Positions 14,576 through 55,076 of a stretch of 64,000 nt of DNA are shown one piece after another; the stretch's first letter is position 1; each line of letters starts with the position of its first letter. Made by a program: the position numbers and the translations under genes. The stretch is from NCBI GenBank assembly GCA_964187785.1, contig OZ076415.1, positions 6,882,001 to 6,946,000 on the forward strand, given 5' to 3'. The DNA is from Amphiscolops sp. MND2022 (lineage: Eukaryota). Below the pieces are notes generated by a model that made no database searches, was not told the origin of the DNA, and saw nothing but the letters and a program-made list of their open reading frames with translations.

Positions 14576-15224
14576 CTGCTCTTGAATTTTCATACGACGT
14601 TTTTGGTTTCCCCCGTGTAGTAAAAACAAATCTGAGTTTGAACTGCCATCTTCTTTGAACAGGCCTGAGTGAAAAACTGTTCACAATTTGCAGAGAAATC
14701 TGGGAGTGAAATATTGTTATCGATTTTGTGGGTCTTTTCTGCTACAACCCCTCCCCCCCTCCCAGCAAGTTTACTCCCATCCCACTCAATTCACTAAGAA
14801 GTGAATCAATATAAAGTCAATCTTATACAACAATTCTTGTCCTAATTTTTGAAATGTTGATAGGTGTTCATTATTGAGAAGTGAATCATTAGAGAGTGAG
14901 TCAAATACCTCGATTCTTATCCTGACAAAAAATATATTGGGGGTAATTTTTAAAGAATAGAGAGGGGGAAAACTATCTCGTTTTAAGGGAAAGCAATCCA
15001 TTACTCATGTCAAAGACCAATTTTTTTTGATACTCAACTGTTGTCAGATGAAATCAGAAAGCAATGATACGATATGAAGAAAAGATTAAAAGTTGTTGTT
15101 AACATAGACTATCAAACTAAATTTCGCGATAGCAAGATCAAAGTTTTTACATATTATTTGAAAAATTAGGTATACTCAGTTTTTCTGAGATAACATAGGC
15201 TGTAAAAAGTCCACTGTAAAAAGT

Positions 15225-15296
15225 CGACACGATAGAGATTCGAACCCACGATCTATGGCTTCATAGTCTAATTGCTTACCACTCGGCCATAGCGCG
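15225..15296 (-). pseudogene. tRNA-derived sequence (pseudo-tRNA or SINE head)
   Basis: A box TGGCCGAGTGG, B box GGTTCGAATC, tRNA-like spacing, followed by T runs. Anticodon and acceptor stems do not pair properly. Confidence 0.65.
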
Positions 15297-15558
15297 TTGT
15301 TATTTGTTTGTTTTTATTTAACCATATTGTTAAACAACCGAGATAATTATCTCCATTTTAAAATGATGGCGTTCTAAATTCATTTGTGGTTTGGCATGTT
15401 CTGTTTTTTTTCGCTTGTTCGTTTCCTTTTTTTCTGATTGGAAAAACAGGTCTTTATTTGAAATGGGAGGTTGTAAAATCTTTTAGCGGTTTGAAATTTT
15501 GGCGTGTACAAGTAAGACGCTTCGAGGATAAACTATAATGTTGTTTTTGTTTCTACAG

Positions 15559-18526: not shown

Positions 18527-18627
18527 ATAAAGAAGCTGCCTGGAGCAAACTTTTATAGTTCATTATTTTTTTATCAAACTCTTTAGTTTAGAATTGAACA
18601 GAATTTAGTTTAGAATTTACTCCTTTA

Positions 18628-19255
18628 TATTGGTTTGCAAATGTTCGAGCATTTGTTTGTAGAAATCACTTTTAATGGATTGAAATACGTCTGTCGATTC
18701 CGCATATCGCTTTTCGCAGGATGAAGAATTTTTTCTAGAATAATGGAATCCACTGCAATAGAAACTTGAGTCTATTTAGAACTAATAATTTACTGAATGT
18801 ACCCCTTTTGGATTGGTTTGCAAATGCTTAAGAATTTGTTCGTGGAATCCACTGTCAATGTATTGGTATATGTTAGTCAATTCCGCATATCGCTTTTCGC
18901 AGGATGAAGAATACTTTCCAGAATAGTGGAATCCACTGCAATAGAAACTTGAGTCTATTTAGAACTAATAATTCACTGAATGTACCCCTTTTGAATTGGT
19001 TTGCAAATGTTTAAGCATTTGTTTGTGGAATCCACTGTCAATGTATTGGTATATGTTAGTCAATTCCGCATATCGCTTTTCGCAGGATGAAGAACACTTT
19101 CCAGAATAGTGGAATCCACTGCAATATAAACTTGGGTCTATTTAGAACTAGTAATTCACTGATGTACCCCTTTTGTATTGGTTTGCAAATGTTTAAGCAT
19201 TTGTTTGTGGAATCCACTGTCAATGTATTGGTATACGTTAGTCAAATCCACTTAC
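18628..19255 (-). repeat. Inverted copy of the 175-183-bp tandem array (~3.4 copies)
   Basis: gtacccc at 18799, 18982 and 19164; reverse complement of the 12636-13220 units. Confidence 0.9.
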
Positions 19256-32985: not shown

Positions 32986-33369
32986 CACACTCAGACTAAC
33001 GGATACTAGTTAACTAACTTTTTTGAATTTTGTTTTGGCAACTATCAGATACATTGACAAGAGGATGCGATTCCTAGGTACTTCCTAGGTACTGCATTCA
33101 TGTGTGTGGATAATTTAGCTGAAAAAAATTCAAAAAATTCAAAATATCAAAATTGTTTGTGTTCTTTTTTAAAAAACATCAAATTTTCAACTAATCAACC
33201 CCCGAAATTACCCATCGAGAAAAGAATTTTATCAGTTATCTTCTCTCATGACATACCACGAAATCCACCCCAAGATTTTAAATCCCCCGCTAGTTCATAG
33301 AAAAATATCCTTGAATTAAATAATGGTAGCAACCTATTACTTTCGATTGTTTTTCAATGTACTATCTAC

Positions 33370-36300
33370 TATATATTATCTACTCTTTTTAGCAATCAGG
33401 AAAACCCAAACAATCCCAGGTCTGATAGGAATGACAGCACTGTGTCCTCCCAAAATGAAAGTAGATTTTTCCGTGTTGGGAAACAATGGGAGGAAAAAGA
33501 CTGAACGGGTAATGCTGGTCCCCGTGTCCGCTATCAACCATGCATGCCAACCAAATGCCGAATTTATAAATCATGGCGAATTGTCAACAACCGCCTTGGA
33601 AGTTAAGACAACTCGACCCCTCAAAAAGGGGGAAGAAATAACGTTGTCCTATGGCGAAGACTTTTTCGGTGCTGGCAACAAGGATTGTGGTTGCAATGAT
33701 TGCAAGGAAGAACAACTCGAATCAGAACCTACCATACAGATTCGAGAGCCAGAGAACGAACTACCAACCTCGGAAATTCAAGAGACACAGAAGGAACCAG
33801 CAACCTCGGAAATTCAAGAGACACAGAAGGAACCAGCAACCTCGCCAATTCAAGAGACATAGATCGAACCAGCAACCTCGCAACTTCAAGAGCCAGAGAA
33901 CGAAGCAGCAACCTTGCAAACTCAAGAGCCAGAGAACGAAGCAGCAAGTTTGCAAAGTCAAGAGACAGAGAACGAAGCAGCAACCTTGCAAACTGAAGAG
34001 CCAGAGAACGATGCAGCAACCTTGCAAAGTCAAGAGCCAGAGAACGAAGCAGCAACCTTGCAAACTCAAGAGCCAGAGAAAGAATCGAATGTTGAGCTAG
34101 AAGAGCCAGTTTATACGAAGGTGCTACCAGTGAACCGTGATTTAATGGATTTTCTGGATTCACAGGACCTCGCTGATTTTTCGGACGTTAATTTCGCGGA
34201 AATGTCAGCGATTGCTTACTACACCCCAATGCAACCTTTTCAGTTTCAGCAACTCCCTTATATGCATCTTTGCCCCTCTTACATGGAAAACATGAATTAC
34301 ACGCCACAATATCCACAACATATCACTTACATGCCACCGTTTCATCCCCCGATGCCACCTCAACCATTAATACAACAACATCCTCAACCCACCAATTCAA
34401 CTCCGCGTTCTGCTCCGAAAATGCTGGAAGATCCTAATCCTGGCCAAAAGTCTACCAATTGCAGAGTATTCATTGATCAAACTAGATGAGCATATAGAAT
34501 GCCTAATTTGCCATAAAGTTGTCAAACGAATGGACAAGCACCTCGAAAGTCATTACCTAGAGAAAAGAAAATTAAGTATAACATGGATTTGTTTCGGACG
34601 AAAGAATCTGGCAGAAAAACAGTATGGAACTGTGAAGTATGCTCCGAAGATTCGCAAGTAAAAAACCTCATAGAACAACATGTATTGCTACATTACAAGA
34701 AATTGAAAATCCCTCCAGTAGAAAATCTCTCCCCCAGAGCATCCGCGACAAATGCAAAACGAAAATTCTCGCTCGGGAAGAGGACGTTCAAGTGGTGGAA
34801 CGACTCATGAAGCAGCAACAGGTTCTGGCGGATATGTCAGAAAAAGGGCCCCGAACAGTCAGTTGCTGCCAAAATTCAAATTTGCACTCTGTTATTCAAC
34901 GAAACAAAGAAACTGACAGATGCCAAAGCCCTTGTGGAGTCAGCCCGCAGAATTCAGATGAGAAAGTCATTGAAGCCCCAATCCATGCTGATTTATCTAG
35001 CAACATTCAGACATTTCGTGGAATATTGCTTCATGTATGAGGATGGAGTGTGCTCCCAAAACAATAACCACCACATGATGATGAATGCTGCAATGCGGCA
35101 GGTACATTTTCTTGAAATTTCAAAAGTTCAGCTCTATACAATCCATACTCATTAGAAAAAAAATAAATTATAGAAATCTTTTAGTGAGAAGGTCAGGCGA
35201 TGAAAGAATTGAACCAACTATTTTTTGATGTTTGTCAGGCATAGGAGTAATGTTGTCGAATGAAGGAATTGAATCAACTAATTTTTGAAGTTTGACACGC
35301 AAAATAGAACCGATTTTGAAAGATTTTTTGATCCAACGCGCAAGAGATGTTATCGAGCGTTGTAAAAACACTAACTAATAACTGACGTTCGTCCCGGTGA
35401 AGAGATGTTCTTGAATGATGAAAATAAAAATCTAGGAAAAAAACAAGTTGGGCAGAAAAATGTTTTGTTTCTGACTAAGAAAGCATTCAGAAGCGCTGCT
35501 GCTCGGGACTACAAGAAAGTAGTAAAACAGCTGAGAGCTTTGGTCCCTAGCACGGAATTGATCAGCGAAAGGATGCGAGGGACACTTGAAATCCTGAATA
35601 AATCTTGAAAGAAAACAGTCTATCGTACAAAATACAACAGGCCCTGAACTTCTTCCTCTTACAAGGCAGACTCAGACTCAACGTAAGAGCCGGACCAATC
35701 CTCACCCTAACTTGAGAGGATTTCAAATGGATTTAGGAAAACGGTGCCCCCTTTACAAACCGATAAACATAAGACAGGGTCGTACTATACAGTATACATT
35801 CAAATTGAAAAGGACCAGCGGGAGTTCCTGAAACGCCAGGAAGAAGCTTTTGTGCGGGAGGTGGGAGATCAACCTAACTTCATCTTGGCCTCGCAAAATA
35901 ATAAAGAAGAGAGGTCCATTTGCCGGCATTTGCGCGAGGTTATTTTTCGACTTGTTTTTATCTACACAAAAGAAAAATATCATTACTGCTGAGTCTTGAA
36001 TTTCAATCCATTTTTCCAGGTCTTCTTCACTCTGTTCATGACGATCCCAGTGCTGTGCGATTCAATGCAAACTCTATCAGAAAATATTGGGAACGTCGTT
36101 GGAAAGTTATTGGAAAGGACTCTGGGGACGGCGTAATGAAAGCACATTATGCCCAAACTGCGCATTCGGCAAAAACAGATCTTTACATTGGATGAGAAGG
36201 CACAGAGTCGGAACGTGCATGCCTTCTTTCAATGTACGCAAACGGTTTGGCCTTGAGACCAGGATGCCAGGAAGAACCTGCAATGGAAGAGCCTGAAGAG

Positions 36301-36600
36301 GCATCTGACTCAGGTAATTTTCATGTTTTTTTCCTTTTGCGTGTTTCTAAAATTACAGAAATTATTCAAAAAATGCCCCTTTTCAGAAAGAATTTTTACA
36401 AAACGTCCCAAAATCAACGTCTCAAATGATTTTTTTCTCTAGATTCATCAGATTCTGATATCAGTGAGCCGGATGATCAACCGCCGCTGAAACGCCCCTG
36501 CTTGACTGCCCCGCCCCTAAGCCTAAGCCCAGAGTTAACAACCCGCGGGACTCCATAAATTCAACACTACATTCAGATCCCCGATGTGACGCATTCATGA
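33370..36600 (+). pseudogene. Suv4-20(KMT5B/C)-like SET + 12-aa acidic repeats + zinc finger + tyrosine recombinase, multi-exon, decayed
   Basis: DFSVLG..VMLVPVSAINHACQPNAEF..GEEITLSYGEDFFG..CGCNDC; CLICHKVVKRMDKHL; ALNFFLLQ..RLNVRAGP; HKTGSYY; NANSIRKYW; AHSAKT. Premature stop at 33860 and several frameshifts. Confidence 0.85.
33740..34085 (+). repeat. 36-bp coding tandem repeat (EPENEAATLQTQ-like)
   Basis: About 9 copies of caagagccagagaacgaagcagcaaccttgcaaact variants. Confidence 0.9.
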
Positions 36601-38147
36601 AGTCCCTAAAGTGCTTCCGCAGCACCAGTGGCAAAAACGTATGGACAGAGCGGGAAAAAGGTGCAGTTGCCCTTTTTTTCCAAGTGAAGCTGAACCCCGC
36701 TTATGGGGATATTTAAGCCCGCTGCGAAGAAGTCGGATATATTTTTGCCGAAGACGTCTACATTAGAATATACAACAAAGTGAAAGCAGCCACTTTCCTT
36801 CATTTGAGATAGACTTTTGAGATTCCTAAACTCGGAGATAATCTGCAAAATTTGCATTGTTGACATTAGTTTCAATAAATCTAATGTTTCAATATCAATT
36901 ATTCTTCAATATGATGCTTTTCTTTATAGCTAACAGAACAGAAGCAAAAAACAGTAAGTTTTGAGCCCACTCAAATCCCTAGAGTTACAAATAGAATTAG
37001 TGTATGTAAATCAAGTACACTGAACAAATAAGTAGGAAACACTGAAATTTGATTGGCTGTTATCATTGGTATGTGATCATTAAGTTGCCGCTTTTTTCTC
37101 ACTTTATTTGAATTGTCAACATCTTGCAAAAGTTCGGTCAGTTTGATGAATTATAATTGTCACTAGTTGAACGTCACTAAAATTGAATGGACATTGCATC
37201 GGTGTTATTGAAGGTTAGTGTATATTCAATACTTTCGTACAGAACGCTTGAACAACATCTTCAGAGTTGTTAGATGATACGTACAAAAATATATTATACT
37301 GAATCTGAGAACTCTCGAGAAGGAAGTTCCGATTGTTAACTGGTAGCTGAAGAATGTTTTGTAAATAGTTGTAGATATTACGGTGAATTCCCAAATAAAA
37401 TAGAGCAAACATTAATACTAAGATAGTTTCAGATAGAATAAAAGAAAATGTGTTTGATTTATTGGTTAATTCCAACCACCGATTTAATTCCCCGGCGATT
37501 TAAATCCCCCAGTTTTCACATTCACAATTCACAATTCAAAATATTCACTGAAAACAGTATAATATTAACAGAAACTATTTTCATTTTTATGTTAAATAGG
37601 AATAATTTCGTTTTTATGTTAGTTGCTCTTATGTTATTTAATACGTAATCAAATTTACGATCTTGTTTCATTGTTAACTTCAGTGGAAAGTTGCTCAAAT
37701 TAGGCTGAATGAATTCATAATGAAATATCACTTTGACTGGAAATTTAGATAGGAAATACATATAAACAAACTTGTGACCTCGGTGTCCTGGCAAAGGGTG
37801 TTCCGAATTTGAACTTCCGAATAATTCGTCGTAAAATGAGTCGAACCAAATGAAACAATAATGGATCTTTTCCGTTAATTCCCCCAACAAACCATCACAA
37901 ACCTTTTATTCTTTGAAATATTGGTAACAGACTATCAATTTTTGGTGAATTGAAAATTCTAACTGCAATTCAAAACGATCGCTTGAAATGTTTACTTTGT
38001 GGGAATTCACAGAAAGCTGTTCTTTCATTTGCAAACCAGTGTAAAAAAAACGAAGTAATGGAGTATACTAGTTACACATTTGAAGCAACTGCACAAAAAT
38101 TTAAAATCAGTGCACGCAGATTGAAAGATGTGTCAAACAAGTGTTAA

Positions 38148-39139: not shown

Positions 39140-39195
39140 TTATATAATGATAGTAATAATAATAATAATAATCATAATAATAATAATAATAATAA
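39140..39195 (+). repeat. (AAT)n microsatellite
   Basis: taataataat run immediately after the E2 right end. Confidence 0.9.
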
Positions 39196-39664
39196 AAATC
39201 AGGGACAAGTTGCATTTTAATTTCCAAAAATCATACCAACTTCCTCGATTTTGTTATTATCCAAAATGCCATGTTGCACCATTATTATTAGACTTAATAA
39301 TAATAATGACATTATTAACAAAAATGCAACTTGTCCTCATATTTGCAACATGTCCCTGATTTTTTCACACTTTTTACACTTTTACTAACAACTGTTACAT
39401 TATTAACAGAAATGCAACTTGTCCTCATATTTGCAACATGTCCCTGATTTTTCACACTTTTTACACTTTTACTTTTTCTACCAACAACTGTTCCAAGATT
39501 GTTACTTTGAGCGAACGTTATCTACAAGTTAGGCAAATGTCGATTTCAACTGAATGGTAACTCACCTGGTACTAGAAAAAAGGTAAAATTTTGTTAATGA
39601 AACATTCAATTGAAAATTTTAATTCTTTCGAATTTAAAACAAAAATAAAGAACAATATTTAATT

Positions 39665-42600
39665 TCAGCAGTTTTTCAGAAGAGACCATGCAGTCTTAAT
39701 CTTTTGGTAGATTTTCTTGACAGCCTCTTGATTGAAGTTGAACTCCATCTGAATCAACATTTCCCGCACTTCCGTCATTTGTACTGATGATGTGACAGTC
39801 TCAGCGAGTAGGCTTCATGCTCGTTTCTCCTCCTCTGTCCACCCAGTTTTCGTTTTTCTGAAAACAGACATGCTTTTGATGAAGCGCATTCGGGTTGGAC
39901 TTCGTTGTCTTGGTTTGGGCGTTGGTTTGTTCCTCGTGGTTCCACGTGAACTTGGCCCAGGCGTGTAGGGTGGCTGATGGTTGTCTTCGTCATCAGCGTC
40001 GTCACCACAGGCTGGCTCTCTTCTCGTACGCTTTCGAACGGAGTGTTCTGGCGAAGGCAGGTTGTTGGCTTCGTCATTATCATCGTCATCGGAGGTCGAC
40101 TCTCTTCTTCTTCGCTTTCGACCAGAGTGCAGATCCATCGTCGAATTCAGCGACGCTCTGTATGGTGCTCGCGGTTGAGGCTCCTCCTCTTCTGATACTG
40201 TATCAGAGTCAGAATCAGGGCAATGGTCGGCAGGCAATGGTTCAATTCCTGATTCATTGCCATCATCATCTTCATGAATTGTGTTAAGTTCTTTGCGGTA
40301 CACATCAAGCACTTTATTTCTGTCAGCCTCTGTAACTCCTGAAACCACATTGTGAATAAATAAGTGATTGTAACAAAATTACAATCTGATATAAACATCA
40401 ATGGAAAAATTTGCATAAAAGATTTCAAATGTATCGGTAGTTTGGTATAAAATTATTTGCAAAGTTTGCTTACTTATGTAGTGTTTTTTCGCCGTTGATC
40501 TCGAGTGACCTGTCTGGGAGAAATGAGCTTCTTCATCGTTGTCCTGCAGGTTCATCTTGTCAATATGCTCATCCCAGAACTTTCGAATTGACGTGGCATT
40601 GTACCTTGTCACTGTGGGATCGTCCCCAAACAACTCTGTGAAGCACTGGTTAATGTACCAGGCGATCTTCGTTTCCTGCCCATTTTGACTATTGGAGAAG
40701 ACGTAGTCCGGAACGGTGCCATACTCATCAAGCATCCGTTCCCGCATCTCTTGCACGAATTTGACTTGGTCCCCATCCATTTTCACGGCCACTGTGTAGT
40801 ATTTTCCTGCAAACAATATATTGTATTAAGTTAGAATAAAAACTTTTGTTGAACACTTTTTTATAGAAAAACCTTTATAATTTCTATAGAATAATACAAT
40901 GTAGCGTTTTTTATAGTATTCACTCTTTAAATTCTATAAAAAGTTACCTGTTTTGTGCTCGTTGGTTTCAATTGAGAATCCATGCCTCAAATGAGAATCA
41001 AATTGATCCCATTTTATGTTCAACAGTGGCCCGGGCCTCACATTGAGTCGAACTTGGAGCAGGAAAAAGTTGAGGGCCTTCAAGAAGTTTAGGCTCAACT
41101 TTTTGTCGTCGAGGTCGTTCGTCAGAGCTTCTATCACCTGCCGTTGTCGTTTGGTCACCTGTTGTTTTGTAGGCACTTGCGCGAACCTTTCTTTAGCTCC
41201 CTCGCGTTTTGACTTTGACACATCCACGCTGATTTTTCGTTTCACATCCCTGCAGGCCTTCTTCATAACTTCGATTTTGAAATCTTTCCTCACATTCGGT
41301 CTTTCGTAGCAGTTGCAATACTCACAGAAGTTCTTGAAGTGAGTGAGGTAAATGTCAGTTGTTGTTGGCAGCCATCCCTTCCGCCGTTCTAAGTTTTCAA
41401 TTGCTGGAGCCAGCGCTTTGGGCTGCGTTAGACCCAATGTTTGTCCATACAACAACGCAAGAACGTTCTTCAAGCCATCTTTCCCCTTCACTTCCTCATT
41501 TTCATCTGTATTTTTGCCTCTTTTGCGGAATTCCATGTTGACAAAGCTGGTGACAATGTCCAAGTGCTCCTCACGGGGAATACATCCATTCCTTAGTTTA
41601 CATCTCAGTTCTACTGGCAATGATCTAAACAGAAAAAGAACAAATTGTAGATTTTGCTTCCATTTTTCAATACCATAATTTAGGAAACACTACTTTATTC
41701 TTTGAGAGGTGATTTTTACTATAACAAGTACTACAAATGTTTCAGTTCTAGTACTAATACTTTGCTTAAAGTAGTAACTTACGTTCTACTCTGATGATTA
41801 GCAACAACAGATATGTTGGAGTCATTGCACTTCATGCTCCTTTTGTGACTGGCCCTGTCTATGAATCTTCTGTTATGCTCAGAACAGAAGAACACTTTGG
41901 TGTTCGCATGAAGATGCTGAGTCCTGAAGAAGTCTTTCAGCATCACGATGTCAGATCTCGTCAGCTCTGGATGTTGTTGAGAGAGGTGCTTGTCGATCCG
42001 CTTCGAAGTCTTCTCGCAGATAGGGCATTGGGTCACGTCGTCGTATTTGGTCTTCTTGGAGTACGATTTAGCTTTGCGCTGTTCAGTGCTATTGGAATCA
42101 TCGGAACTATTACCCTTGCAAACTTGGCACAAACATTGAACGTTATTCTGGCCAAAATAATTTCCCCCATAACTGACGAAAATTTCCTCATTCTCAGCAA
42201 TCCCCCGAGTTGTTTCCACTCTCAACACAGTTTGATTTTTTGTTGGCCCTCCATAGACAAACACTGCATTGGGTTCACAGCTGTGGTTAATGAAGCTTGC
42301 TGGTCCTAGCATTATCCTCTCCTTTGAGTTGTTGTCTGTCGCCCCGAAGACAGAGAACTAAGGAGCGTTTTGTACTGCATCTGCGAAGTAGCCGTCGACA
42401 CCACGAATTTTCAGTCCTTTCGGGAGCGCCTTGCGAGCTCTGACAGAAAACTCGATCCCGCCTTGGTATCCGGGAATGTCGACATACTTGACACTTTCGA
42501 ATGATGAAGAATAGGATTCCATCATCTGACTGAAAAGCTTCTGGTGCTGGGGATTGTTGCTGATGATCGCAAAAATATTTGTTGGTGGCTCAACGTACTT

Positions 42601-43635
42601 GTGGGAAGTACGTACGTCGGTATCGATGAAGCTTTTTGTGCAGTATGCGTCAATAGCACCAAGTACCAAGTCTGGACGCATCTCGTCTTCCGTTTCAGGC
42701 AGTCTCAATAGTTGCGGCGATACAGTTTCTGGGAGAGCCTCGTCAGTGGATGTTGCAGTTTTTCTGTCAGAAGTTGACTCAGCTTTTTGCGGTGAATAGT
42801 CAGTTTGTGCTGGGGGTGAATCGTCAGTGATGGCCAAAGTTCCAACATCAGGTGCTGACGCAGTTTGTGGAATTGGGTCGTCAGACGATTCTGGGGGTGA
42901 ATCGTCAGTGAGGGCAAGAATTTCAGCATCAGGTGAAACGGCCCTGGGTGCTGAAGTTTCACCATCAGGAGCTGACCTAGCTACTGGGGAGGAACCGTTA
43001 CTTAGCGCTGAAGTTTGATCATCAAGAGTTGACACAGCTTCTGATGGTAAATCGTTACTAGGTGCCGACGTTTCAGCATCAGGTGCTGACGCCGTTTGTG
43101 GAATTGGGTCGTCACACGATTCTGGGGGTGAATCGTCAGTGAGGGCAAAAATTTCAGCATCAGGTGAAACGGACCTGGGTGCTGAAGTTTCACCATCAGG
43201 AGCTGACATAGCTACTGGGGAGGCACCGTTAGTTAGCGCTGAAGTTTCATCATCAGGAGTTGACACGGCTTCTGGGGGTGAATCGTTAGTAGGTGCCAAA
43301 GTTTTAGCATCAGGAGCTGACACAGATTCTAGGGGTGACCCGCCAGTGGGTGACGAAGTCTCAGCATCGTGGGTGGGTTCAGAAATTTCAACGTGAGAAG
43401 CTGACGCAGGTTTTGTAAGTGGCTCTTCAGTGGGTACTGCAGTTTCATTGTTTATGGTGTTAAGTATAGGGGCATTAACCATGCTTGTTCCGTTTTCAAT
43501 GTCACAGTTCGTCTTCTTTCCTCTCGTTTTCGGTTTTGGTTTCCCCTCGTATCCCTTCGGTTTTGCTGCAGGTGCAGTCTTGACTTGCTGCCGGGTGGCG
43601 CGGGTTAGAAGAGCTTGTGATCGAAGGCTTGGCAT
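39665..43635 (-). pseudogene. Suv4-20-like SET + zinc finger + tyrosine recombinase + acidic linker + Myb/SANT-like domain; 4 coding exons, two in-frame stops, no frameshifts
   Basis: Exons 43635-41783, 41624-40948, 40806-40474 and 40338-39665 with compatible phases. SET: FSVFG..IMLGPASFINHSCEPNA..EEIFVSYGGNYFGQNNVQCLCQVC. YR: RLNVRPGP, HKTG|K, TSIRKFW, GHSRSTAKKHY. C-terminal WTEEEK. Stops at 42358-60 (TAG) and 39815-17 (TGA). Confidence 0.88.
42780..43400 (-). repeat. Coding acidic repeats (~19-20-aa subunits, ~80-aa higher-order duplication)
   Basis: APDGETSAPR.VSPDAEI.ALTDDSPPES.DDPIPQTASAPD occurs twice. Confidence 0.85.
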
Positions 43636-44078
43636 TTTTAAGCAATTTGGCTATCAGTAGATTTTTTTACCGCTGTTAAGTTTCAACTTGTTTCCAAAGT
43701 GGAGCTGGGTTTAATGAAAAATTTTTCAAAACTTGGAAGTCTAACAAATGTTAACTCACTCTGATGGACTCAATCACAAACGATGAGGCTCTATTAGACT
43801 CATTTTAAACGCAAACTGGTATGCAACATGGTTGTTAAAGTTACACCTCTGATATTGAACTGGTTGTTAACATGAGTAATATGTTTACACCTGAGTTGTA
43901 CGCTATGGTATTTTATGATTAGATAAACGAGGTCTTAAAACTAATATTGAATACGAAGGTATAAATATAAAAATGTTGGAAGTTTTACTGAATCTAGGAA
44001 AAGTGAACAAAAGATAAATATATGTTGGCAAAAGAAAAGTTTAGGAAGTTTGATCATTGATACAGAATGGGGCATGAT

Positions 44079-47000
44079 TCAGTTTTTCAACAGCTTTCTT
44101 CTGGCAGTCAATATTTTTCTATTGAGGGTTTGCCAGCTGGGCAGAGTCACATTGTTTGACATCATTTGTTGCTAAACACAAAAAAACTCTTATTAGTGTG
44201 TTTTTATAGTATACTGTATTGATATATGGGGATAATAAGTTTTTAGAATACATATTTAAAGAAGAAAATTAATGTATGATATATGAAACTTTTTAATAGA
44301 CATAACTTCATAACATTTAAACAATAATACATTGTAGAATCTATGGGATTAACTCTATAATTTCTATAACAAAAGGTGCTTTGGAGAATATCTTATGGAA
44401 TTCAAGATATAATTTCTATAGAAAAGTATTGTTGGGAATATCCTATGGAATTCGTCCTAGAACTTCTATAGAATAGTACTTTGGGAGATACTTTGGAAAA
44501 GTAATGTGATGTTAATAAGAAATAAAACTGAGTATACCAGGTAAATTTGAGTTTCGTCTTGAGCATCTTTGTTCAGCAGGACATCTGCAACTCGAAGCAT
44601 CTCGTTCGAAGGGTTTGAGTCGAGTTGATCAATTAGCCACAACAAGAGAATCGCCGGGAGAGAAGGATAGTAGGAGTTAAATGACAACCCCTGTTGCTTC
44701 TCTTTGTTGAATGTTTCCACAATTTGAGCTAAACATTTCAGAAATCACATCTTTTGTCAACGTTGGTTTCATGGAAGAACAATTACTTCATTTCAAGATA
44801 CAATCCTATAGCTATATGTTGTGGTAACATTAGATGACTTACGCATTTGAACATCCCAAAGGAAGTTTGAACCACGCGCGATTGAACCCTTCGTAGTCCG
44901 AACCATATGAGGCACTCCTCCGGGGATGATCATACCCTCGTCCTCCTTTAGCACTACTTTCCTCACGGCCAACCTTGGGTCTGTCCCAAATATCTCAGTC
45001 CTGTAAAAATAGAACGTGAAGTTATATTAATTATTCAAAGTAATTGAATAAGTCTATAAGAGAAGTATATATGTATGAGTGCTTAGACTGCTGAGAACAT
45101 CTTACAGAAATTATGACAACTATATTATGTCGGAGAACTCTCGATAGAAATTTTAGTCTCTTACTGATTTCCGGCGAGGTAGTCCTCGAAAAGCTCCTTG
45201 TTAAATAGAGTTGGCTCGACTACCAAGAATTCCTTCTCGCCCTTCAACAAAATGTAGAAGACACTGGTCCCCGAGAAGTCGACATGCCAAGGTGTTATGG
45301 CTCCTCCCTCTGTCATCAGCATGTACTTGCTGACGTCCGAGCTCTTCAACACTGGTGGCAAAACTTTTTCATAGCGGTGTCCTAGTGACACTTTTTTCAC
45401 TACATCAGGCGGCTGGAAGTGGCAAAGCTCTGCGTTATCTGAAAAACACGGCTACAAGGTACTCAAAGCGCGAGACACTGAGAATGTAGGGTAAACAGTG
45501 TTTTTACGTATGAGCTTATAAATTCGATATATTCTATGTATCAAGTTCTACAAAAAATAGGTTCAACCAACCCGGTGGAAAAAAATCAATGACGTTCATC
45601 GGGAATTTGGATTCCCCAATGACTTTGATGAACTGATCCAGAGTCATCTTGTTCAACTCTTCCTCACCGGACTCATTGTAATGCCGGACCAAGACATCTT
45701 GTTGAGCCATGCAGTTTTCGGTGGCTATCTGCCGAACACAGTCCTTGAAGTTGAGGCTCAGAGTCTTTTTCGGAATGGTAGAGGTCAATCCTTTGAATTT
45801 GAAAGCATCCTTGATGTGATACACCTTCAAATTCTCCCTCATTCCAGATAAGTCCCTCTCAACATCGTCAGCAGATATGACCGTGACAAACGCAGTATTC
45901 TCTGTGAAAACGTTGTCGAAGAACCGATTCAATTCTTCAGTGTTCCTCATAATATCCATCAGAGCTTGAGGAATCTCTGAATCGGTGTCATCATATTGTT
46001 GTTGCGAAAAGTCATCTTGTTCTCGAGTGGTGCCTTCTTCTTGCGGTTGTGAATTGGATGACGAGGCTTGTTGCTGTGAATTTGTGGACGAGGCTTGAGG
46101 AATGCGTTGAGCTGGAAGCTTATCAAGAGTGGGCATTTTGTTGTCTCTCAACGTAGCATTAATAGCGGCTAACGACGGCATGTAGTTGAAGGAAGACTTC
46201 CTCTGCAGTACTGTCTTCATCGATGGCAGGTTCCTGGCTTTCATAAGTGACAGCACATTCTCCTCAGTTGGCAGGAAAAGCTTGTACCTGACCTTTTGGG
46301 TGAAAGGCTCCTTGGATTCCCACTGTGCCTTCATAATCCTTCTGCAAAGGTCACCAAGGCAATGGTCCCCCAAGCGCCAGATGTCTTCAAAGGGGAATCC
46401 AGCGGGGCCATAGCCGCAGAAGAAGCATGGCAATCGTGTCTTTCCCTGACACGTCCCTTTCTTGAGAGCTTGGTGCTTCCTCAGTGTGGTTCGTGTCTTG
46501 AACCTCTCTTTACAAACTGAAAGAATTGACGATTAAACTACAACAAAAAAGATACGAAATGTGTCTAAGTAACTCCTATATCTACGTCTATTACCTCAGG
46601 CATTTTTTTGGAAAAGTACCATGGACAATATTTTATTGAAATAAGTCAATACCTTCTATAGAATTGTATCCTGGGAATATCTTATAGAAATCACTAGATG
46701 ATTTCTATAGAATAGTGTCATGGGGATTATCCTATAGATTTTAATCAGTAATTTCTATAGAATGGTATCACGGGATTCTTTTATAGAGTTTTTTTCATAA
46801 TTTCTATAGAATAGTGTCATGGGGATTATCCTATAGATTTCATTCAGTAATTTCTATAGAATGGTATCACGGGATTCTTTTATAGAGTGTTTTTCATAAT
46901 TTCTATAGAATAGTACTATTCTATAGAAATTATGAAAAAAACTCTATAAAAGAATCCCGTGATCTCAAAAGATAGTTTTCAGAGTATTGTTCAAAATAAA

Positions 47001-47391
47001 TCAAACTGAAAAGATATTCTTCATGCTACTAATCTATAGAAAATATGGAGCAAATTCTATAAAAGTGGAATCAATAAGATAATCTGCATACTACGTAGTA
47101 TGCAGATTATCTTATTGATTCCCCTTTTATAGAATTTGCTCCATATTTTCTATAGATTAGTAGCATGAAGAATATCTTTTCAATTTGATTTATTTTGAAC
47201 AATACTCTGAAAACTATCTTTTGAAAATCACTTCATAATTTCTTCAGAATACTTAACTTCAGAATACTTCAGAATGTTTTAAATAATTTTATAAATTTCC
47301 CTAGTTAGTGACGTTAGTAGTTAGTTAGTTAAGTACTCTACTCACCGTTGCACTGTGGTCTGGCATCTTGATAGGGGGGTTTGCTAGCCAT
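44079..47391 (-). CDS. Multi-exon C2H2 zinc finger + JmjC (KDM2/KDM7-like) protein, apparently intact
   Basis: Exon 47391-47346 spliced to 46516 rebuilds CN|VCKERFKTRTTLRKH. FPMNVID; KYMLMTEGGAITPWHVDFSGTSVFYILLKGEKEFLVVEPT (His 45284, Asp 45278); IPGGVPHMV..GSNF (His 44907); YYPSLPAILLLW; last exon stop at 44079. GT-AG phases are compatible. Confidence 0.85.
46650..46865. repeat. TTCTATAGAA-rich tandem repeats (~100-bp unit), intron 1 of the JmjC gene
   Basis: atttctatagaatagtgtcatggggattatcctatagatt repeated; related motifs at 40860-40920 and 44330-44480. Confidence 0.8.
46866..46963. repeat. 98-bp loopless palindrome (1 mismatch)
   Basis: atcacgggattc...tagt|acta...gaatcccgtgat, centre 46914/46915. 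Confidence 0.95.
46965..47224. repeat. 260-bp loopless palindrome (2 mismatches)
   Basis: tcaaaagatagttttc...tactac|gtagta...gaaaactatcttttga, centre 47094/47095. Confidence 0.95.
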
Positions 47392-49560
47392 GCCGATAAC
47401 TTTTGGGTGAACTTTAATGGAAAATAATTTGTTAGCTGTTTCCAATTTACAGTAGTATGAATGAATTTACTGAGTGTTGTTATGAATCATGTGCGTGTAA
47501 TGTGATTGACACCTAATGCTGCTAGCACAGTATGTACGTGTACATTGTTCATTCAATCACGCTCTGCACGCAGGCTGCAGCCAATCAGAAACTCATATTT
47601 GTAAAACAGGTACATGTATTACTTGTTATGCAATTTTGCTCAAATACTTTAGTGGCTAGCTCAATTAGTTCTGCTTTAGTGGCTAGCTCAAATAATTATG
47701 AATCATATAAGTAAAACTACCGAGAGAGTTCTTCGACAAAGTTTTGAGAATATGTACTTTTTAAAGATTTTAATTTAGAAAATTTTAAGATTTTGAAACT
47801 TTTAATCAGCTTCCTTCAGAGTTTCATATATTGTTCATCAGTGGCTTCTTGGCGTCAAATTTATTCTAAAATGTCATGAGGGTAATATACTGATATACAT
47901 ATATCGAAGCTATCATTTAGCAGTCTCTGTGGGAAAGAAGCTGTTCCACTTTACTAGTTCAGAATAGAAACGTGACACGTTTTTGTTGTTTGAATTATAC
48001 TCATTGGATTAGATTTTTGTTATATACCAGTTATCCACGGAGATGTCACTTCTTGTGAACTGGTAACTTGTTGATCCCAATTTAAAATATCAAGTCTCTC
48101 ATCTGTATATTTTCTGTGTATGGAGAACCAAAACCAATTCAAAACATTCAGAAAATCACAAATTGAACGTGTGAATCTCACAAAAACTTGCGATTTTTGT
48201 TATATACGTTATCCACGGAAATATTACTTCTTTTGAATTTGTTATTTGTTGATCCCACTTTACAATATCATCAGTCTCTCATCTGTAAATTTCCTGTTCA
48301 TGAAGAATTTAATAAAAGCAATTCAGAACATTCAGAAAATCACAAATTGAAGGTGTGAATCTCACAAAAACTTGCGATTGGTTTAACCTTGGCCAATCAG
48401 AAGCGAAGCATTCAATTGTGAAATCAATAACTAATTATGCCTGTCGTTTATACAGAACTTATTCGAACTCTCTATTTTGTCAGTTATCAACATCTACTAT
48501 TTCTATTTTTTACAAATTATTTTTACTATTAGAAGGATGAGGCTCTCATTATCCATAACGGTTGTGTATTGTTACTCAGGCAACTATTACGTTTTGCGTG
48601 AAAGGGGTGACTTCTGCATCGAGGTAAATTCAGTGTGACAAGTTTCCAGCTTGGAATTGTGTTGGGGGAGTAAAATAAGTGGCCTTTTATTTATGAATCA
48701 TAGACTGATTTTATCCTGTACGAATATGTTTGGTAAACTTTCTGTCGAAATTAACCTGATGTATTATCTGCGACGACATCTTAGACTTCAAAACTTCAAT
48801 GTGCAAAGAATTCTCAAATCTTATTGGTTCACAAAACCTTGTGCTCAAATTCCATAAGTAAACGAGTCTCCATCAATTGCTGAATTGATTTTTTAAAATT
48901 TTTACCGTTTTTCTAAACTAAAAACTAACTTTTATAGTTTTTTACTAAAATTACATCAGAAACGAAAATTTCTCCGAATTTTTTAATCCCATGATGCTTT
49001 TTGTTTTTGGAAATTACCAAGAAAACAAAAAGGGGGCATTTTTTTTCATTACCATTTGACTTCATGTTACTGTATTGATTTGTGAAAATAAGATCAAAAG
49101 TTTTATGCGATATTCTGATACAGGTGTCGAAATCAGTCCGAAGTAGCTGATTTCTTTCAAAAGAATTTCAAACTATTAGTACTGATTTTCCATGAGATGC
49201 TTTTGGTTGACAACAGTTTTTCAGGTCACTCTATGATATAAAGCAGAGTTTTATCGGATTAATTGAATTTTTGACACCGAAAATTTTTTTCAAAAATCAT
49301 ACCAAATTGCATCTTTTCATGCAAAATGGATTTTTTTTCTGGAGCAACTTGGCAAAAAAATTTTATCCCAAAAATTTTTTCAATAGAAAAAAATGAAAAT
49401 TTTATATTGCCATCCTTTTCCATTTTTAGCCCCAAACACGTGATTAATTTTTTTTGAGTAAGATGGCCTTAGGAAACGAAATATGATGGGTTGGCAACTT
49501 GCATGCCAACTTGCACTCTTTATTTTGCAAGTTGTCCTGATTAATTTTGAAATCACCCTG

Positions 49561-49700
49561 NNNNNNNNNNNNNNNNNNNNNNNNNNNNNNNNNNNNNNNN
49601 NNNNNNNNNNNNNNNNNNNNNNNNNNNNNNNNNNNNNNNNNNNNNNNNNNNNNNNNNNNNNNNNNNNNNNNNNNNNNNNNNNNNNNNNNNNNNNNNNNNN
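49561..49700. other. Assembly gap (140 N)
   Basis: Run of n. Confidence 1.
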
Positions 49701-51145
49701 AAATACAAGTTTTTTTTAACAGCCGAAAACATTCCGCTATAACGTATTGCGTCGTCTGCCAATTGTATTTCGTCAAAATATATGCGGTATGGTTTCAAGT
49801 GCTGGTTATCATTGTAACGTTTCTCTAGAAGTATGATCTAAAAGAAACGCAATGTGATCAGGATTCCTGAGAAAAAAACTGCAACGAAAATAACTGAGAA
49901 TTAAATACTATGAGTGAAAATCCTTAGAGGACTGTGTGTGTAGAGGACACGAAACGTAGTGGGACCTAACCCCATTTTTTACTAATCTTTGGTGAGACGG
50001 GCAATAGGTTGGACATAAAAAACGTGACCTCATACGAGACAGTGAAAAATGAGTGCAATTGGACAATAACTATTTGAACTAAGCTTCTGCCAAGTGCTGA
50101 ACACTCCAAAACTACACAACCTTAAAACACGTTGTTTCACAGCTATTTCGGCACTTCTAGTAAAAACAGGACACTAGACGTAATGGTATTTGAACCTTGT
50201 GTCTTATTTTCCCTGCGGTTGCTTGGGGAGGGGGCAATTTGCGCAATTATTGACAAAACACAATTACCTTTGAAAAAACGGCATGGTAAAAGCCATTTAT
50301 AATTATATAATTAGAAACCAACACTTTAATGTACTTTTATTCTGACATCAAATCAGTATTTCAACCAATAATGGTTAACTAAAAACTTTGGCTTTCAAAT
50401 AAAATCATTTCATTGTTGCCAAACAAACTCAAACGACCCAGTCTCTATTCTTTTTTGTCATCATTTAGTGTCTCTCCTCATCTAAAATCACTCAGTCTCT
50501 TTCATTTAGTCTTCTGTTCTCATTCTGCCATCAATCAGTCTCACTTACCAGGTCATCTGTACTCGGTCTCTCCGCAAACCCTCTTCTGCACCCAGTCTCT
50601 CTCCACAAGTCATACATCTGTACTCATTTTCGCTTCTTGATTCAATGGATGAACTCATCTCACAAAATGGCGAAAACGCAGTTAATAAATTACATGGAAA
50701 GTTGCATACCCGACGCAAAGTTGACTTTTGCTACTGCTGCCAAGTGTTTTAACCAAACGGGAAAACGAAGTACGAAGTTACACAAAAAACACGTACAATG
50801 AAGAGATCATTTCCAATGAGATCTTGAGACGGAACAATAATCTTCATGTTAATTCTTTTAGGACTCAGCTCTAAACCAAACCAGTACCCCTTAAACCAAA
50901 TCCAGTACAACAAAAATCCAAAGAAGAAATTATAAGCCCTCTCGAGCCACTCTTTCGCTACTGCTTCAACCAAAAAGAACTTTTTGATTTGATGAATTGT
51001 AATTTTTATATTCATTTTGTATTCAGATGACCAAATAATTTTATTCATATTTAGTTATTTTCTGTACAAAGCTGTAACTTTTTTGAGTTAACGTAGAGAG
51101 AGAAACGCGACGTGATTGGGATCAAATGTGTATTGTGTCATTGCA

Positions 51146-51541
51146 GTAGCGATCTAAAACATCGCAACTCCATTTCCTAAAGTTTTTCAAGTCCAATTTT
51201 CTTGTAAACGGTCACAAAAACAAAAAATTGTCAGCTGGGAGAGTTTCTCAGATATTTTAGTTTACAAAAATATTTGTTTGAAATTTCGACGACGAAAATT
51301 TTAAAAATTAGAAATTTTATGTTTTGGAAATTTCATCGAATTTGAACTTTTTTAAACTCATTCTTTGAACAAAAAATCGAATTTTAATTAACAGTTTTTG
51401 AAATTTGCCTTTTTTTACCTTTTTCTGTAAGGTTCGTAGAAATTTCAAACAAACATTTTTGCATTCGTGATAGTTTACAAGATATTTGCGTTTGAATTTT
51501 GACATTTTAGGCAATAAGGTTGCGATATTTTAGAACGCTAC
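51146..51541. mobile_element. MITE-like fold-back element (copy at 58928-59324; degenerate relatives at ~52760-52980 and ~53900-54600)
   Basis: Terminal inverted repeat gtagcgatctaaaacatcgcaac / gttgcgatattttagaacgctac (2 mismatches), plus internal inverted tttgtttgaaatttc / gaaatttcaaacaaac. Confidence 0.55.
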
Positions 51542-54500
51542 CGTGGAAAGATGATCCTAAAAAAACACAATGTGATCGTAATTTGACTTGCTTGGTTTCA
51601 TTAGAGGTTTTGCCTCAACGAAACTCTATTTTGCACTGTCATAGGAGATACCACCGTTGACGAGCAAAAAGAATAAAAGCAAATAGAAATGTTTTAAAAG
51701 AAATGCCATCCTGGGAGACTAAAGCTCGTTTTTAGAAAAGAATGGCAACACTCTATTGTCAAACGTTCTCTGGCCCACAATAGTACAGAGTAACATTGCG
51801 ATAGTATGATTAAACTGTCAAAGAAACAAAAGTTGTTTACAAATATTACCAACTTTTAGGTCGAGATAGCAATTTGAATCTTGTTTCAAAATATATTTTT
51901 CTATTTTCAGAATTATCAAATGTTTGACGATATACGGAATCGAACTCATTCATATTGCGGAATGGTGAAGGAAATCATTCCTTTAACTCATTCATATTGC
52001 AAACCGTTTATGTCCCACCTAAAGCCCGTCCCACCAAGGCCTTGTAAATGGTGTCTATGTCTCACCAACTCTAGTTGCCTCAACGCCATTACACTCTTAT
52101 TGAAAAATTGAGAAACTTTCACATGAATAGCTTTTGGCAGAAAATAGTTGCGGAGATATCGGTTCCTTTTGTTTAGTCTAAATCCTTGTTCACAAATTAT
52201 TTTTTAAAGTATGACAAATGAAATAAAATTACCTACACGTCAGGTTTTCCTAATATGGTATGACGAATGTATGTCTGCCCCTTATCATCAGCCATAATAA
52301 ATTGCCCTATTTACATTAAAACCCATAAATTGTGGAAACTATGTGAATTATCAATTTCCATATTTGGTCACGTAAATACTTGCCACGAAAAAGATTTATG
52401 TTTCAAAACTCAATTTTACGAAGAAAGCGAATCAACATCCCACATTTTTGCTCTTTTTGGTTACCCCCACCGCCGATTAGTTTTGAGAAATTAGTTTAAA
52501 AAATTATAACACAAAACCTTGATTAAAAACCATAAACCTTTAATTTTATCTTTATTTTCATGGTAACAGTTTAGAATTGAGATTTATTTTAATCATCTAT
52601 TTATTTTAATTATTTATTTTATGTGAGCAAGTTTATCACATTATTTTGTGCAGTCACAAGAAAGTCAACGACTTTCTGTTTTGAGTTGAACTTTCTTTCG
52701 CTTTAATTTTTGCGATAATTTTGCCCGAAATTCTTTTTTGATCACCCCTGCCGGAATATACGGTAAATTATTTTGTATTTTTCTTAAATTTTTCAAAAAA
52801 GATCGTAGAATTTCAAACGAACATTTTTGTAAACTAGATTAAAATCTTCTTTAAAGAGTTCCAAAGATTAAAAACTTCCATAGTTGACAATTTATCGGAT
52901 TCGTGACAGTTTTCAAAAAAATTGGATTTGAAAGTTGCAATTTTGGGCATTGGAGTTGCGATAGTTAAGAACGTTACATTTACTGAACACAATTATCAAT
53001 TATGACGTCACAGCAGTCCTGACATTCGGTGAAAATTGCGTTCAGTCCCAGCATGGTTCGTAAACGGATTTACAAAATATAAACTTCGTTGACACTTGAG
53101 AATTCTCAGATTTCCCAGAATTCTTTCCCGATTGAACCTAACCAGATTCACATTCAGCATTTATTGAACACTAATTTGCATTATTCGCAACTTTTTTTTT
53201 CCATTATACGCAACAGCGAATAATCAACAGCAACAATTACATAACGAGCATAACAAAAACAACAACAAGTATAGCGGGCGGATTTGTCAATTCAGAATTG
53301 AACTCTGTTACCTTTCATCGCCTGATAACGTCATTGATTCAATGCGTATTGTTTGTAATGTCCTAATTTAATGTCAAATTATCACGTACCGAATACACCT
53401 AAGAACAAATAACATAAAAACGGAATTTATCCTATGGGATTGACTTCGCATATAACATATAAAAAAGAAATTAGTTTCAAATTACATAAAAGAAACCAAA
53501 TACCCGGTTGAGCAATTGAATTCACGGAATTTTATAAGTATTTCTGATACTTTTCTCAGTAAGTCTTTTGAATTGTGAACGCTTTTGACCAATAAAACTT
53601 TCTCGTAAACCATTTTGTTTTTGTTCAGTGAAACTAACTTCTTTTTCATGTCATTTGAAACTACTTCAGCGTAGTTTTAAGGTAAAACTCGCTATTGTTA
53701 ATCAATTTGAATCAATTTGAACATCCGTCTTTCCAAGTTCTATATATAACCGTCCTCCTATATAGCGTAAATCCAGAATTAACGTTTTCTTCTCAATCAT
53801 CCCGTAGGTGTAAACAATATAGAAGTTCGTCTGTAAAACAAAACATTCGACAAAACTCGGTATCACACCGGGTTTCATTTCCATTGGAACTTCAATGCTT
53901 AAAATTGCAAATTTCAAATCGAAATTTCTTGAAAACTGTCACGAATACAAAAAAGTGTCCGCTAGGAAAATTTATTAGAATTTTATCTAGTTTACAAAAA
54001 TGTTTGTTTGAAATTTCTGCGACAAAAATTACAAAAATTGGAAATTGGAAATTTTGACAAAATTTATTCAAATTTGTACTTTTCTGGACTTTCACAAAAG
54101 TGAAAGTATATTTTTGAAAAATTTTCATTCAATCAAGTGCCTCCAAATCTGCCGAGGATGCTGATATATCTTGATTGGAAAACTTTCTCGATTTCTAATG
54201 AAAATCATCAGTTTTCCAAATACAATTCTTATAGCCAACTTAATACATGTACTTCGGTGCTCATAGACACAAAAAAGTGTATTTTTCTGATTCGAAAAAA
54301 TTCTCGATCAAAAAAAATCAGTAGGTTCGGGAGATTATATGAAGTTTCCCAATGAAGGAAAAATCCGAAAAAAATGTTCTAAGTTACTCAATTTTCGAAA
54401 AAGTTCAAATTTCAAATAAAATTCACTGAAATTTGCAATTTCTAACTTTTTTGGTAACAGTCGTAGAAATTTCAAACAAACACTTTTGTAAACTATATAA

Positions 54501-54599
54501 AAATTCTAAGAAAATTTTGTATTTGTGACAGTATATGAGATAATTGGTTTTGAGTTTTGCCATTTTATGCTATGAGGTTGCGATATTTTAGAACTGTAC

Positions 54600-54935
54600 T
54601 CGGAATCACATCGCATTAATATTTCAATGAAGATACCGGAAATCACATCGCTTTGCTATTTCATCTGAGTTACTCGAAGTCACATCGCGATGCTATTTCA
54701 TTGAAGTGACTCGAAATCACATCGCGTTGCTATTTCAATGAAGTTACTCGAAATCACATCGCGTTGCTATTTCAATGAAGTTACTGGAAATCACATCGCG
54801 TTGCTCTTTCATCCAAGTTACCCGAAATCACATCGCGTTGCTATTTCATCGAAGTTACTCGAAATCACATCGCGTTGCTATTTCATCGAAGTTACCCGAA
54901 ATCACATCGCGTTGCTACTTCATCGAAGTTACTCG
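54600..54935 (+). repeat. 33-bp tandem repeat (~10 copies; second copy ~62340-62675)
   Basis: gaagttactcgaaatcacatcgcgttgctatttcat variants. Confidence 0.9.
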
Positions 54936-54949
54936 AACTTACAAAGTAT

Positions 54950-55076
54950 TCATCTAGAACATAGTTCACATTTAGCCTGTAGAGATTGTATGAAACAATA
55001 TTTAGATAGTTTAGCAAGTGCAGTTGTCACATGTCCTTACTGCAGATCACCCGTAAATATTAATTTGTACAATTAA
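54950..55076 (+). pseudogene. C-terminal half of a RING finger (copy at 62690-62816 has C>W)
   Basis: HSSHLACRDCMKQY..VVTCPYCRSPV matches RING ligands 4-8; the N-terminal half is replaced by the 33-bp repeat. Confidence 0.5.

Follow-up and report, generated by a model that had tools for sequence, protein, structure and literature searches.

The 64,000-nucleotide stretch analysed here (the window; positions 6,882,001 to 6,946,000 of contig OZ076415.1, assembly GCA_964187785.1 of Amphiscolops sp. MND2022) is repeat-rich, AT-rich eukaryotic DNA. Its minus strand carries two spliced genes in tandem, one encoding a zinc finger (ZnF) protein with a JmjC domain and the other a tyrosine recombinase fused to a SET domain. 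We consider it probable that the two genes belong to one defective copy of an autonomous-type, Crypton-like recombinase transposon whose integration is directed to TAA microsatellites, always with one orientation. That the window holds a copy of a mobile element follows from the observation that at least five loci share the same precise 3' end, a terminal arm next to a microsatellite, and have unrelated flanks. We infer that it is the recombinase which moves the element.

Copies, ends and insertion sites

The comparison loci (L001-L003, L005, L013, L014 and L017-L019), and with them all close relatives of the element, come from one ENA assembly, ERZ25074608. Separate lineages of the SET-recombinase element are referred to as the window type, the L005 type and the P0009 type. 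At least five loci carry the unit of the window at 98-99.6% identity in unrelated surroundings. L017 and L019 correspond to window positions 49560-39144 with 99.1% and 99.6% identity, respectively, and their flanks on both sides are unrelated to those of the window; they also match each other over 10.5 kb without having any flank in common. Parts of the unit were matched at 98-99.5% by L001, L002 and L003. L003/L018 shares its upstream flank with the window (100% identity) and its downstream flank with L017 (96%). Counted over the window-type copies there are four kinds of upstream flank and five kinds of downstream flank. The sequence-only reading, made before any comparison, would have taken single-copy genes with conserved synteny in related species as a sign of host genes; the genes proved to be multi-copy with unrelated flanks. 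The SET exon forms a cluster of 15 distinct members on at least 15 contigs of the ENA assembly; 8 of these members have the full 618-aa open reading frame (ORF).

The copies are in different states of preservation. The JmjC gene is free of breaks in the window, in L017 and in L019. The SET-recombinase gene has two stops in the window and one in-frame deletion of 54 nt in L017, and is unbroken in L019, so that both genes are open in the last of these. In L002 the SET-recombinase gene has no breaks and the JmjC gene runs off the contig. L001 has a 5' deletion in the JmjC gene and one stop in the SET-recombinase gene, and in L003/L018 one JmjC exon is not fully aligned and the SET-recombinase gene combines one stop with the 54-nt deletion seen in L017. 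The ratio of non-synonymous to synonymous differences (pN/pS) between copies gave no evidence of purifying selection and is uninformative with only 10-16 differences. Few, unselected differences are as expected of young transposon copies.

It might be argued that the genes belong to a host gene family which was spread by segmental duplication or by unequal recombination between microsatellites. Microsatellites are prone to recombination, the genes have introns and resemble ordinary chromatin regulators, and the lack of purifying selection between copies was read from 10-16 differences only. Nevertheless we regard this explanation as very improbable. In each of the two lineages of which several copies could be read at an end, the copies examined all agree in their inner boundaries and differ in their flanks, the window-type SET exon exists in at least 15 variants, and the terminal arms and motif clusters described below occur only at the ends. 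Moreover, individual copies decay neutrally, as transposon copies do, and no named NCBI/UniRef orthologue was present among the 23 clusters checked.

The mobile unit is larger than the extent of 39665-47391 which had been given in the sequence-only reading. Its readable part comprises approximately 10.4 kb on the minus strand, from 39194 to 49560, where the 5' end (in gene orientation) enters a run of N (49561-49700). Alignment of copies, which had been proposed as the way to define the ends, placed the 3' end precisely at the terminal arm and its (ATT)n tract, and the 5' end within the N run. Judged by coordinates only, this run also contains the position from which other copies differ in their upstream flanks. 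It is the sole run of N in the window and lies just where the element's 5' end is expected. At the other end a 23-nt terminal arm, AATGCAACTTGTCCCTGATTTTT (39194-39216, minus strand), is identical in the window, L002, L003, L017 and L019. In all of these fully read 3' ends of the window type the gene strand shows AATGCAACTTGTCCCTGATTTTT followed by (ATT)n and then by no homology at all. The tract of the window, which reads as (TAA)n on the plus strand, occupies positions 39144-39193 and directly abuts the 3' end of the unit; inter-copy homology ends here.

The motif of the terminal arm has the form TGCAACTTG(G/T)CCCTGATTTTT. Two 88-nt subterminal repeats (39309-39473, plus strand) each contain two copies of it, inverted relative to the arm. 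Besides the 3' arm itself, these repeats are the only places in the 64-kb window in which the 20-nt arm or its core motif was found; the core is present also at 49526-49537, and a shorter variant of the arm motif at 49344-49514. The 5' non-coding region (47392-49560, minus strand) includes a tandem repeat of 184 nt (48012-48379) and, at 49488-49560, clustered copies of the arm motif. The earlier statement that the element lacks both terminal inverted repeats (TIRs) and long terminal repeats is thus correct in part: a repeat scan revealed no long terminal repeats, but there is a terminal arm with its microsatellite (39144-39216), and there are motif clusters near both ends (39309-39473 and 49488-49560).

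In sister lineages both ends could be read. The P0009 type was found in four copies on four contigs, which share a common 11.5-kb unit with identical inner ends, have unrelated flanks and are bordered at both sides by (TAA)n tracts of 26-69 nt. The L005 type is represented by a full copy and by a partial one whose left end matches it. It is bordered by (TTA)n at either side, and its inverted arms, imperfect and about 21 bp long, are TAAAAATTGGTGCCAAGTTGCA on the left and TGCAACTTGGCCCTGATTTTT on the right. In these lineages the flanking microsatellite tracts are direct, that is on the same strand, and not inverted, and the inverted arms point outward into them.

The orientation of the element with respect to the strand of the tract is uniform in every lineage. 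This holds for the window-type 3' ends at five loci and in L001, for both copies of the L005 type and for all four copies of the P0009 type, the last being inserted with the opposite tract strand to that of the other types. With random orientation, uniformity of this degree would be expected in roughly 1 of 100 such samples. All copies with readable ends adjoin tracts of at least 26 nt (range 26-114 nt). Because only 1-2% of TAA/TTA trinucleotides are located in tracts of five or more units, the association of the element with microsatellite tracts is specific.

The structure of these ends might also be explained by a DDE transposase encoded elsewhere, for instance one of the PIF/Harbinger type, which moves the unit in trans; the recombinase and the chromatin genes would then be cargo or serve another purpose. 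Imperfect inverted arms of about 21 bp directly beside TTA/TAA would suit such an enzyme, subterminal motif repeats are typical of many DDE elements, and there is a precedent in MarCry-1_FO, where a Crypton recombinase rides in a DDE element (PMC3212892). This is the chief alternative, but we consider it unlikely. ORF and Pfam scans of the unit, and likewise of the sister unit in L013, found no DDE transposase, reverse transcriptase or capsid gene, and no DDE gene was recognised in the flanks of L017 and L019 or, by Pfam, in two further elements of the window (E1 and E2, described below); the same absence of a DDE transposase had been noticed in the sequence-only reading. Every end that was read lies at a tract of at least 26 nt, although no more than 1-2% of TTA/TAA sites are in tracts, and the tracts are direct rather than inverted. 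Fixed orientation within a lineage is not predicted by a mechanism which duplicates 3 bp. Finally, the recombinase and its catalytic residues have been kept across lineages which are only about 50% identical.

The recombinase and the chromatin enzymes

The organisation of the region as two tandem spliced genes on the minus strand, proposed at the outset, agrees with the canonical introns in consistent phase. The SET-recombinase gene (43635-39665) consists of four exons (43635-41783, 41624-40948, 40806-40474 and 40338-39665). Its introns have the GT..AG borders GTAAGT..TAG, GTAACT..CAG and GTAAGC..CAG. The joined exons comprise 3537 nt or 1178 codons, in which the window copy has two in-frame stops and no frameshifts, exactly as had been reported. 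In the direction of transcription the gene encodes a SET domain (approximately 42105-42530), a pair of C2H2-like zinc fingers (41818-42033), a tyrosine recombinase region made up of a SAM-like N-domain and a catalytic domain (40474-41624, exons 2 and 3) and a C-terminal domain of four helices (39665-39910), all on the minus strand. The zinc finger pair, recognised by weak matches to ROS_MUCR and zf-Di19 and by family alignment, is kept ahead of the recombinase across the whole family.

The second intron (40807-40947) lies inside the recombinase region and interrupts the HKTG motif. It is supported by three collinear relatives, P0004, P0009 and a paralogue at 35.7 kb in the window, which are without it and read through the site uninterrupted.

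Recognition of the recombinase required distant comparisons. No recombinase domain was detected when single exons were compared with Pfam, and a profile of 41 relatives had zero matches among PDB sequences. A profile search across 1.84 billion representatives yielded 98 relatives. One of these, the natural 481-aa protein P0009, was modelled with AlphaFold2 (AF2) at a mean predicted local distance difference test (pLDDT) score of 80.8. The top 50 fold matches of this model in the PDB are all tyrosine recombinases (among them XerA, Tn1549 Int, XerH, Cre, lambda Int and Flp); their probabilities reach 1.0, yet the E values are only 0.025 or higher. A viral structure library returned almost exclusively named recombinases or integrases. 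At the level of sequence, Phage_integrase was matched by three of the 41 relatives (best 4.3e-5) and the SAM-like N-domain by five, and DUF3435 by none of them. The family is therefore tied to the tyrosine recombinases by fold comparison and a few distant relatives only.

The catalytic residues were counted over 35-41 relatives, depending on the site. The first arginine (Arg-I) is present in 41/41, the lysine of HKTG in 39/41, the second arginine (Arg-II) in 36/39, His-III in 34/37 and the tyrosine in 30/35. The positions assigned to these residues in the sequence-only reading, R (~41037), K (HKTG), R (~40584), H (~40506) and Y (~40479), are right, and the residues are conserved in relatives. 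By this criterion the predicted recombinase of the window element keeps the complete catalytic set R-K-R-H-Y.

The same architecture of SET domain, zinc fingers, recombinase and C-terminal domain is present in P0040, a protein from a JGI metagenome, so the fusion is not limited to this genome. Another relative, the 747-aa P0105, is identical on 15 short contigs, which come from at least five metagenome assemblies among the six places shown (L007-L012; ERZ17174939, ERZ17174956 and ERZ2729xxxx). This suggests a high-copy relative in some eukaryote common in those samples.

The SET domain was matched by Pfam at 1.4e-9. With the intact SET exon of L002 the best solved relatives were KMT5B and KMT5C (SUV4-20H1/H2; KMT5B at 1.8e-11), and the alignment to KMT5B covers NHSC, the region of the catalytic tyrosine and the post-SET CxCxxC. 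By motif criteria (NHxC, catalytic Tyr, CxCxxC) the predicted domain is KMT5B/C (SUV4-20)-like. The C-terminal domain had been called Myb. It is conserved and gave a confident four-helix model, but the Myb/SANT assignment was supported neither by Pfam, which had no match at E<=10, nor by fold search against the PDB, in which the best fold had an E value of 0.95 and none of the top 50 was a Myb/SANT protein.

The ZnF(C2HC)-JmjC gene (47391-44079, minus strand) lies upstream of the SET-recombinase gene and has six exons (47391-47346, 46516-45572, 45438-45165, 45000-44843, 44728-44538 and 44171-44079). The model starts with an ATG at 47391 and runs through 568 codons without a break, in agreement with the earlier view that this gene is intact. 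Both this ATG and the first cysteine of the C2HC finger are encoded in the short first exon. Exons 3 and 4 encode the JmjC catalytic core (44843-45438, minus strand). In comparisons with the PDB, exon 3 matched PHF8 at 7e-11, with PHF2, KDM2A and KDM7 in the range of 7e-11 to 1e-7, and exon 4 matched a KDM7 homologue at 3e-3; the Pfam matches of the core, to JmjC/Cupin_8, were weak. Alignments to PHF8 and the KDM7 homologue showed that the HxD...H iron ligands and the T/K contacts to 2-oxoglutarate are present. On these residue criteria the predicted JmjC domain is PHF8/KDM7/KDM2-like. The protein has no PHD finger, and a C2HC finger is found instead.

Internal repeats and neighbouring elements

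The window contains 10 copies of a repeat, about 50 nt long, which surrounds the palindromic 10-mer TTCTATAGAA; all of them are in three introns of the element genes. An array in the first JmjC intron (46624-46963) is followed by a palindrome (together 46624-47224), three copies (44341-44486) are in the last JmjC intron (44172-44537), and two copies (40854-40946) make up the bulk of the recombinase intron at the HKTG site (40807-40947). The repeat is absent elsewhere in the window and from the other lineages, and in L001-L003 it occupies the same places. Since it fills most of an intron which relatives are without, these data suggest either that an intron arose when the repeat inserted or that the array has a regulatory or protein-binding function. 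The palindrome next to the array in JmjC intron 1 is 260 nt long (46965-47224), with 130-nt arms which are 98% complementary and have no spacer. It falls inside the segment deleted from copy L001. L001 also has a 3-kb insertion (12347-15301) with an ORF for a FLYWCH finger, about 20 nt before the end of the 3' arm.

Distant paralogues elsewhere in the window had been pointed out in the sequence-only reading, and they were found in E1 and E2. In E2 (33323-36800, plus strand) the SET-ZnF-recombinase-C-terminal domain gene has a full-length paralogue, which is decayed and has multiple breaks; it is closest to the P0013/P0016 lineage and intronless at the HKTG site. E2 had been interpreted as an element that captured cargo, and may more simply be seen as another, decayed member of the same superfamily. 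E1 includes a JmjC paralogue (17032-17840, plus strand), a 660-aa ORF ending in a SET domain (21300-23282, plus strand) and inverted repeats of about 600 bp at 12623-13216 and 18613-19249; a recombinase was not detected in it at E<=1e-3. Fragments of Pao/BEL and Gypsy-type retrotransposons (peptidase A17, RNase H, rve, DUF5641 and RVT_1) are located at 1-9200 and 30869-31420 of the window.

The flank upstream of the unit is a tandem duplication of about 8.3 kb (49701-58047 and 58048-64000), mostly non-coding, whose copies are 98.7-99% identical. At the tandem junction there is a (TAA)5 (58010-58024), and the GTGGTCTGAGAATCA ahead of it is similar to the P0009 type's right arm. A 300-nt piece of this flank (53378-53666) shows about 71% identity with L013 12759-13042 and about 73% with L005. 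A possible explanation is a non-autonomous relative which has become stacked at this microsatellite. Stacking was seen also at L014 1-5971, where a copy of the L005 type and a copy of the P0009 type abut one (TAA)n tract in opposite orientations, so that a single microsatellite accumulates several elements. In L017 (14383-17863) and L018 (14404-17863) the 3' microsatellite is followed by a segment of 3.5 kb, whose 639-aa ORF has no Pfam family. The two segments are 96% identical and may represent another repeat which lands in such tracts.

Segments resembling Maverick/Polinton elements, with an rve integrase and a double-jelly-roll capsid protein (2e-22), are located at L014 17405-21446 and L019 1-3992 and are 84% identical. 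Each adjoins a different lineage of the recombinase element, at the same end. The unit could accordingly be regarded as one module within a virus-like element of greater size (Maverick/Polinton-like or of another kind), given that such a segment is immediately beside it in L019 and in the same relative position beside the other lineage in L014. We find this quite unlikely. The copies in the window, L001, L002 and L017 have other, unrelated flanks, the capsid and integrase genes are outside the shared unit, and no relative of the element was found among IMG/VR viral contigs. The presence of two lineages at the same end of diverged Mavericks fits repeated insertion into a tract carried there.

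Proposed mode of integration, related elements and significance

Under the reading we prefer, that of a recombinase transposon specific for TAA microsatellites, the recombinase would excise the element, or copy it, in circular form. Where its two ends are joined, this circle would have a classical recombinase core site, composed of two inverted binding arms around a TAA-repeat spacer. This site would recombine with a genomic TAA microsatellite, and homology in the spacer would fix the orientation of the insert and leave it with a repeat tract at either end. Arm-type binding is probably the function of the zinc fingers, of the C-terminal domain and of the motif copies in subterminal position. 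The order of the genes is JmjC followed by SET-recombinase in the window type and SET-recombinase followed by ZnF-JmjC in the P0009 type; a changed joining point on the circle would give such a difference, as would inversion of the gene block.

The probable substrates of the SET domain and of the PHF8-like demethylase are nucleosomes, either those of the element or those of its target (H4K20 and H3K9-type marks), and this could favour expression, targeting or maintenance. A further-reaching proposal, which we consider possible and make only tentatively, is that methylation of the H4K20 and H3K9 type is altered by the two enzymes on the element's nucleosomes, on the circle or at the target microsatellite, which would allow escape from heterochromatic silencing or the upkeep or copying of the circle. 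Under this proposal the recombinase would incorporate an epigenetic counter-defence, and animals would have a new superfamily of recombinase transposons specific for microsatellites.

A number of observations weigh against movement by a Crypton-like recombinase. The 5' end of the window copy lies within the N run and is unreadable, and the SET-recombinase gene of this copy cannot yield a full-length protein. Short inverted arms are equally expected of a DDE transposon. Direct evidence of excision, circles or empty sites is lacking; no empty site was found, window 56200-58050, beside the duplicated flank, being without other match. In the SET-recombinase family the histidine of HxxR is replaced by N or T. 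None of the 41 relatives matched DUF3504, the marker of animal Crypton recombinases, at E<=1, and there was no named Crypton, DIRS or virus recombinase among the sequence-search matches.

The closest parallel is with the Cryptons (Goodwin 2003; Kojima and Jurka 2011, PMC3212892), in which a tyrosine recombinase is the sole recombination enzyme, reverse transcriptase and long terminal repeats are absent, and genes can be spliced. The model for Cryptons is integration of a circle by site-specific recombination, and the same short sequence at both ends corresponds to the target; in the present family TAA/TTA tracts of one strand were read at both ends in sister lineages and at the 3' end only in the window. 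In an active CryptonF the Goodwin model has been confirmed, and the terminal CACCG equals the CAYCG target (PMC9977147). Eukaryotes have few DNA transposons with a recombinase alone, and these are poorly understood. Among them activity has been demonstrated in one family only, in a green alga, and how copies are gained is an open question (PMC9977147). Recombinases of animal Cryptons match DUF3504 at E<=8e-12, and these elements have no C-terminal domain and no terminal repeats (PMC3212892). The window family, by contrast, adds a SET domain and zinc fingers at the N-terminus, a helical domain at the C-terminus, inverted arms and subterminal repeats, as well as a second gene (ZnF-JmjC). Its units are 10.4-11.5 kb long, and its target is a long trinucleotide microsatellite and not a motif of 4-6 bp.

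The sequence-only reading had described a Crypton-like element with a writer/eraser pair. Of this description the multi-copy nature, the splicing, the tyrosine recombinase as sole recombination enzyme and the methyltransferase/demethylase pair have stood; a match to DUF3504 was not obtained. Judged by the missing DUF3504 match and by published descriptions, the putative transposon is probably outside the known Crypton groups (CryptonF/S/A/I). Membership of CryptonA or CryptonI was rejected on account of DUF3504 (0/41), the C-terminal domain and the terminal arms.

Other elements share single features with the family. Tyrosine recombinases of endogenous nimaviruses have a C2H2 finger and a SAM-like domain, and insertion is into (TAACC)n (PMC10871703). 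Compared by description only, the likeness extends to the flanking target, a simple repeat, and to possible introns. However, nimaviruses are hundreds of kb long and contain virion genes, whereas the unit of the window is about 10 kb, has no virus genes and uses a different target repeat. DIRS, Ngaro and PAT-like retrotransposons are likewise tyrosine recombinase elements of animals; this assignment was rejected, as Gag, reverse transcriptase/RNase H and split or inverted long repeats are absent from the unit. PIF/Harbinger elements and MarCry-1_FO resemble it in having TIR-like ends beside TA-rich target bases. Harbinger elements duplicate TTA/TAA and encode a separate DNA-binding protein, and in MarCry a Crypton recombinase is inside DDE ends. 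PIF/Harbinger membership was discarded because a DDE gene is missing, the C-terminal domain is not recognised as Myb by Pfam or fold and the flanks are direct tracts of 26-114 nt in fixed orientation, and membership of Maverick/Polinton because capsid and integrase genes are present only in the flanks of L014 and L019 and not in the unit.

Fungal Starships are cargo-carrying recombinase elements, and KDZ elements carry TET/JBP. They are comparable as mobile elements with epigenetic enzymes alongside their recombinase, but host kingdom, recombinase family (DUF3435 was not matched), size and enzymes differ, and in the present family the recombinase itself carries the methyltransferase as a fusion.

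It had been surmised that SET-recombinase proteins might already be annotated in other animals. No named NCBI/UniRef member was encountered in 23 clusters or among the matches of the protein searches. A literature search, which did not cover Repbase, found no description of a SET-recombinase fusion or of a transposon with a JmjC partner.

With young, near-identical copies, at least one of which has both genes open, and with ends that can be defined precisely, the family is approachable descriptively. The TAA microsatellite is a simple, abundant and orientation-specific target, and the family explains clusters of elements stacked at one microsatellite; it may also contribute to microsatellite expansion in this genome. 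The family also has a natural fusion of a histone methyltransferase with a recombinase, accompanied by a demethylase partner. How targets are chosen, whether circles are an intermediate and whether a transposon directly manipulates the chromatin marks of its host are questions which can be approached here.

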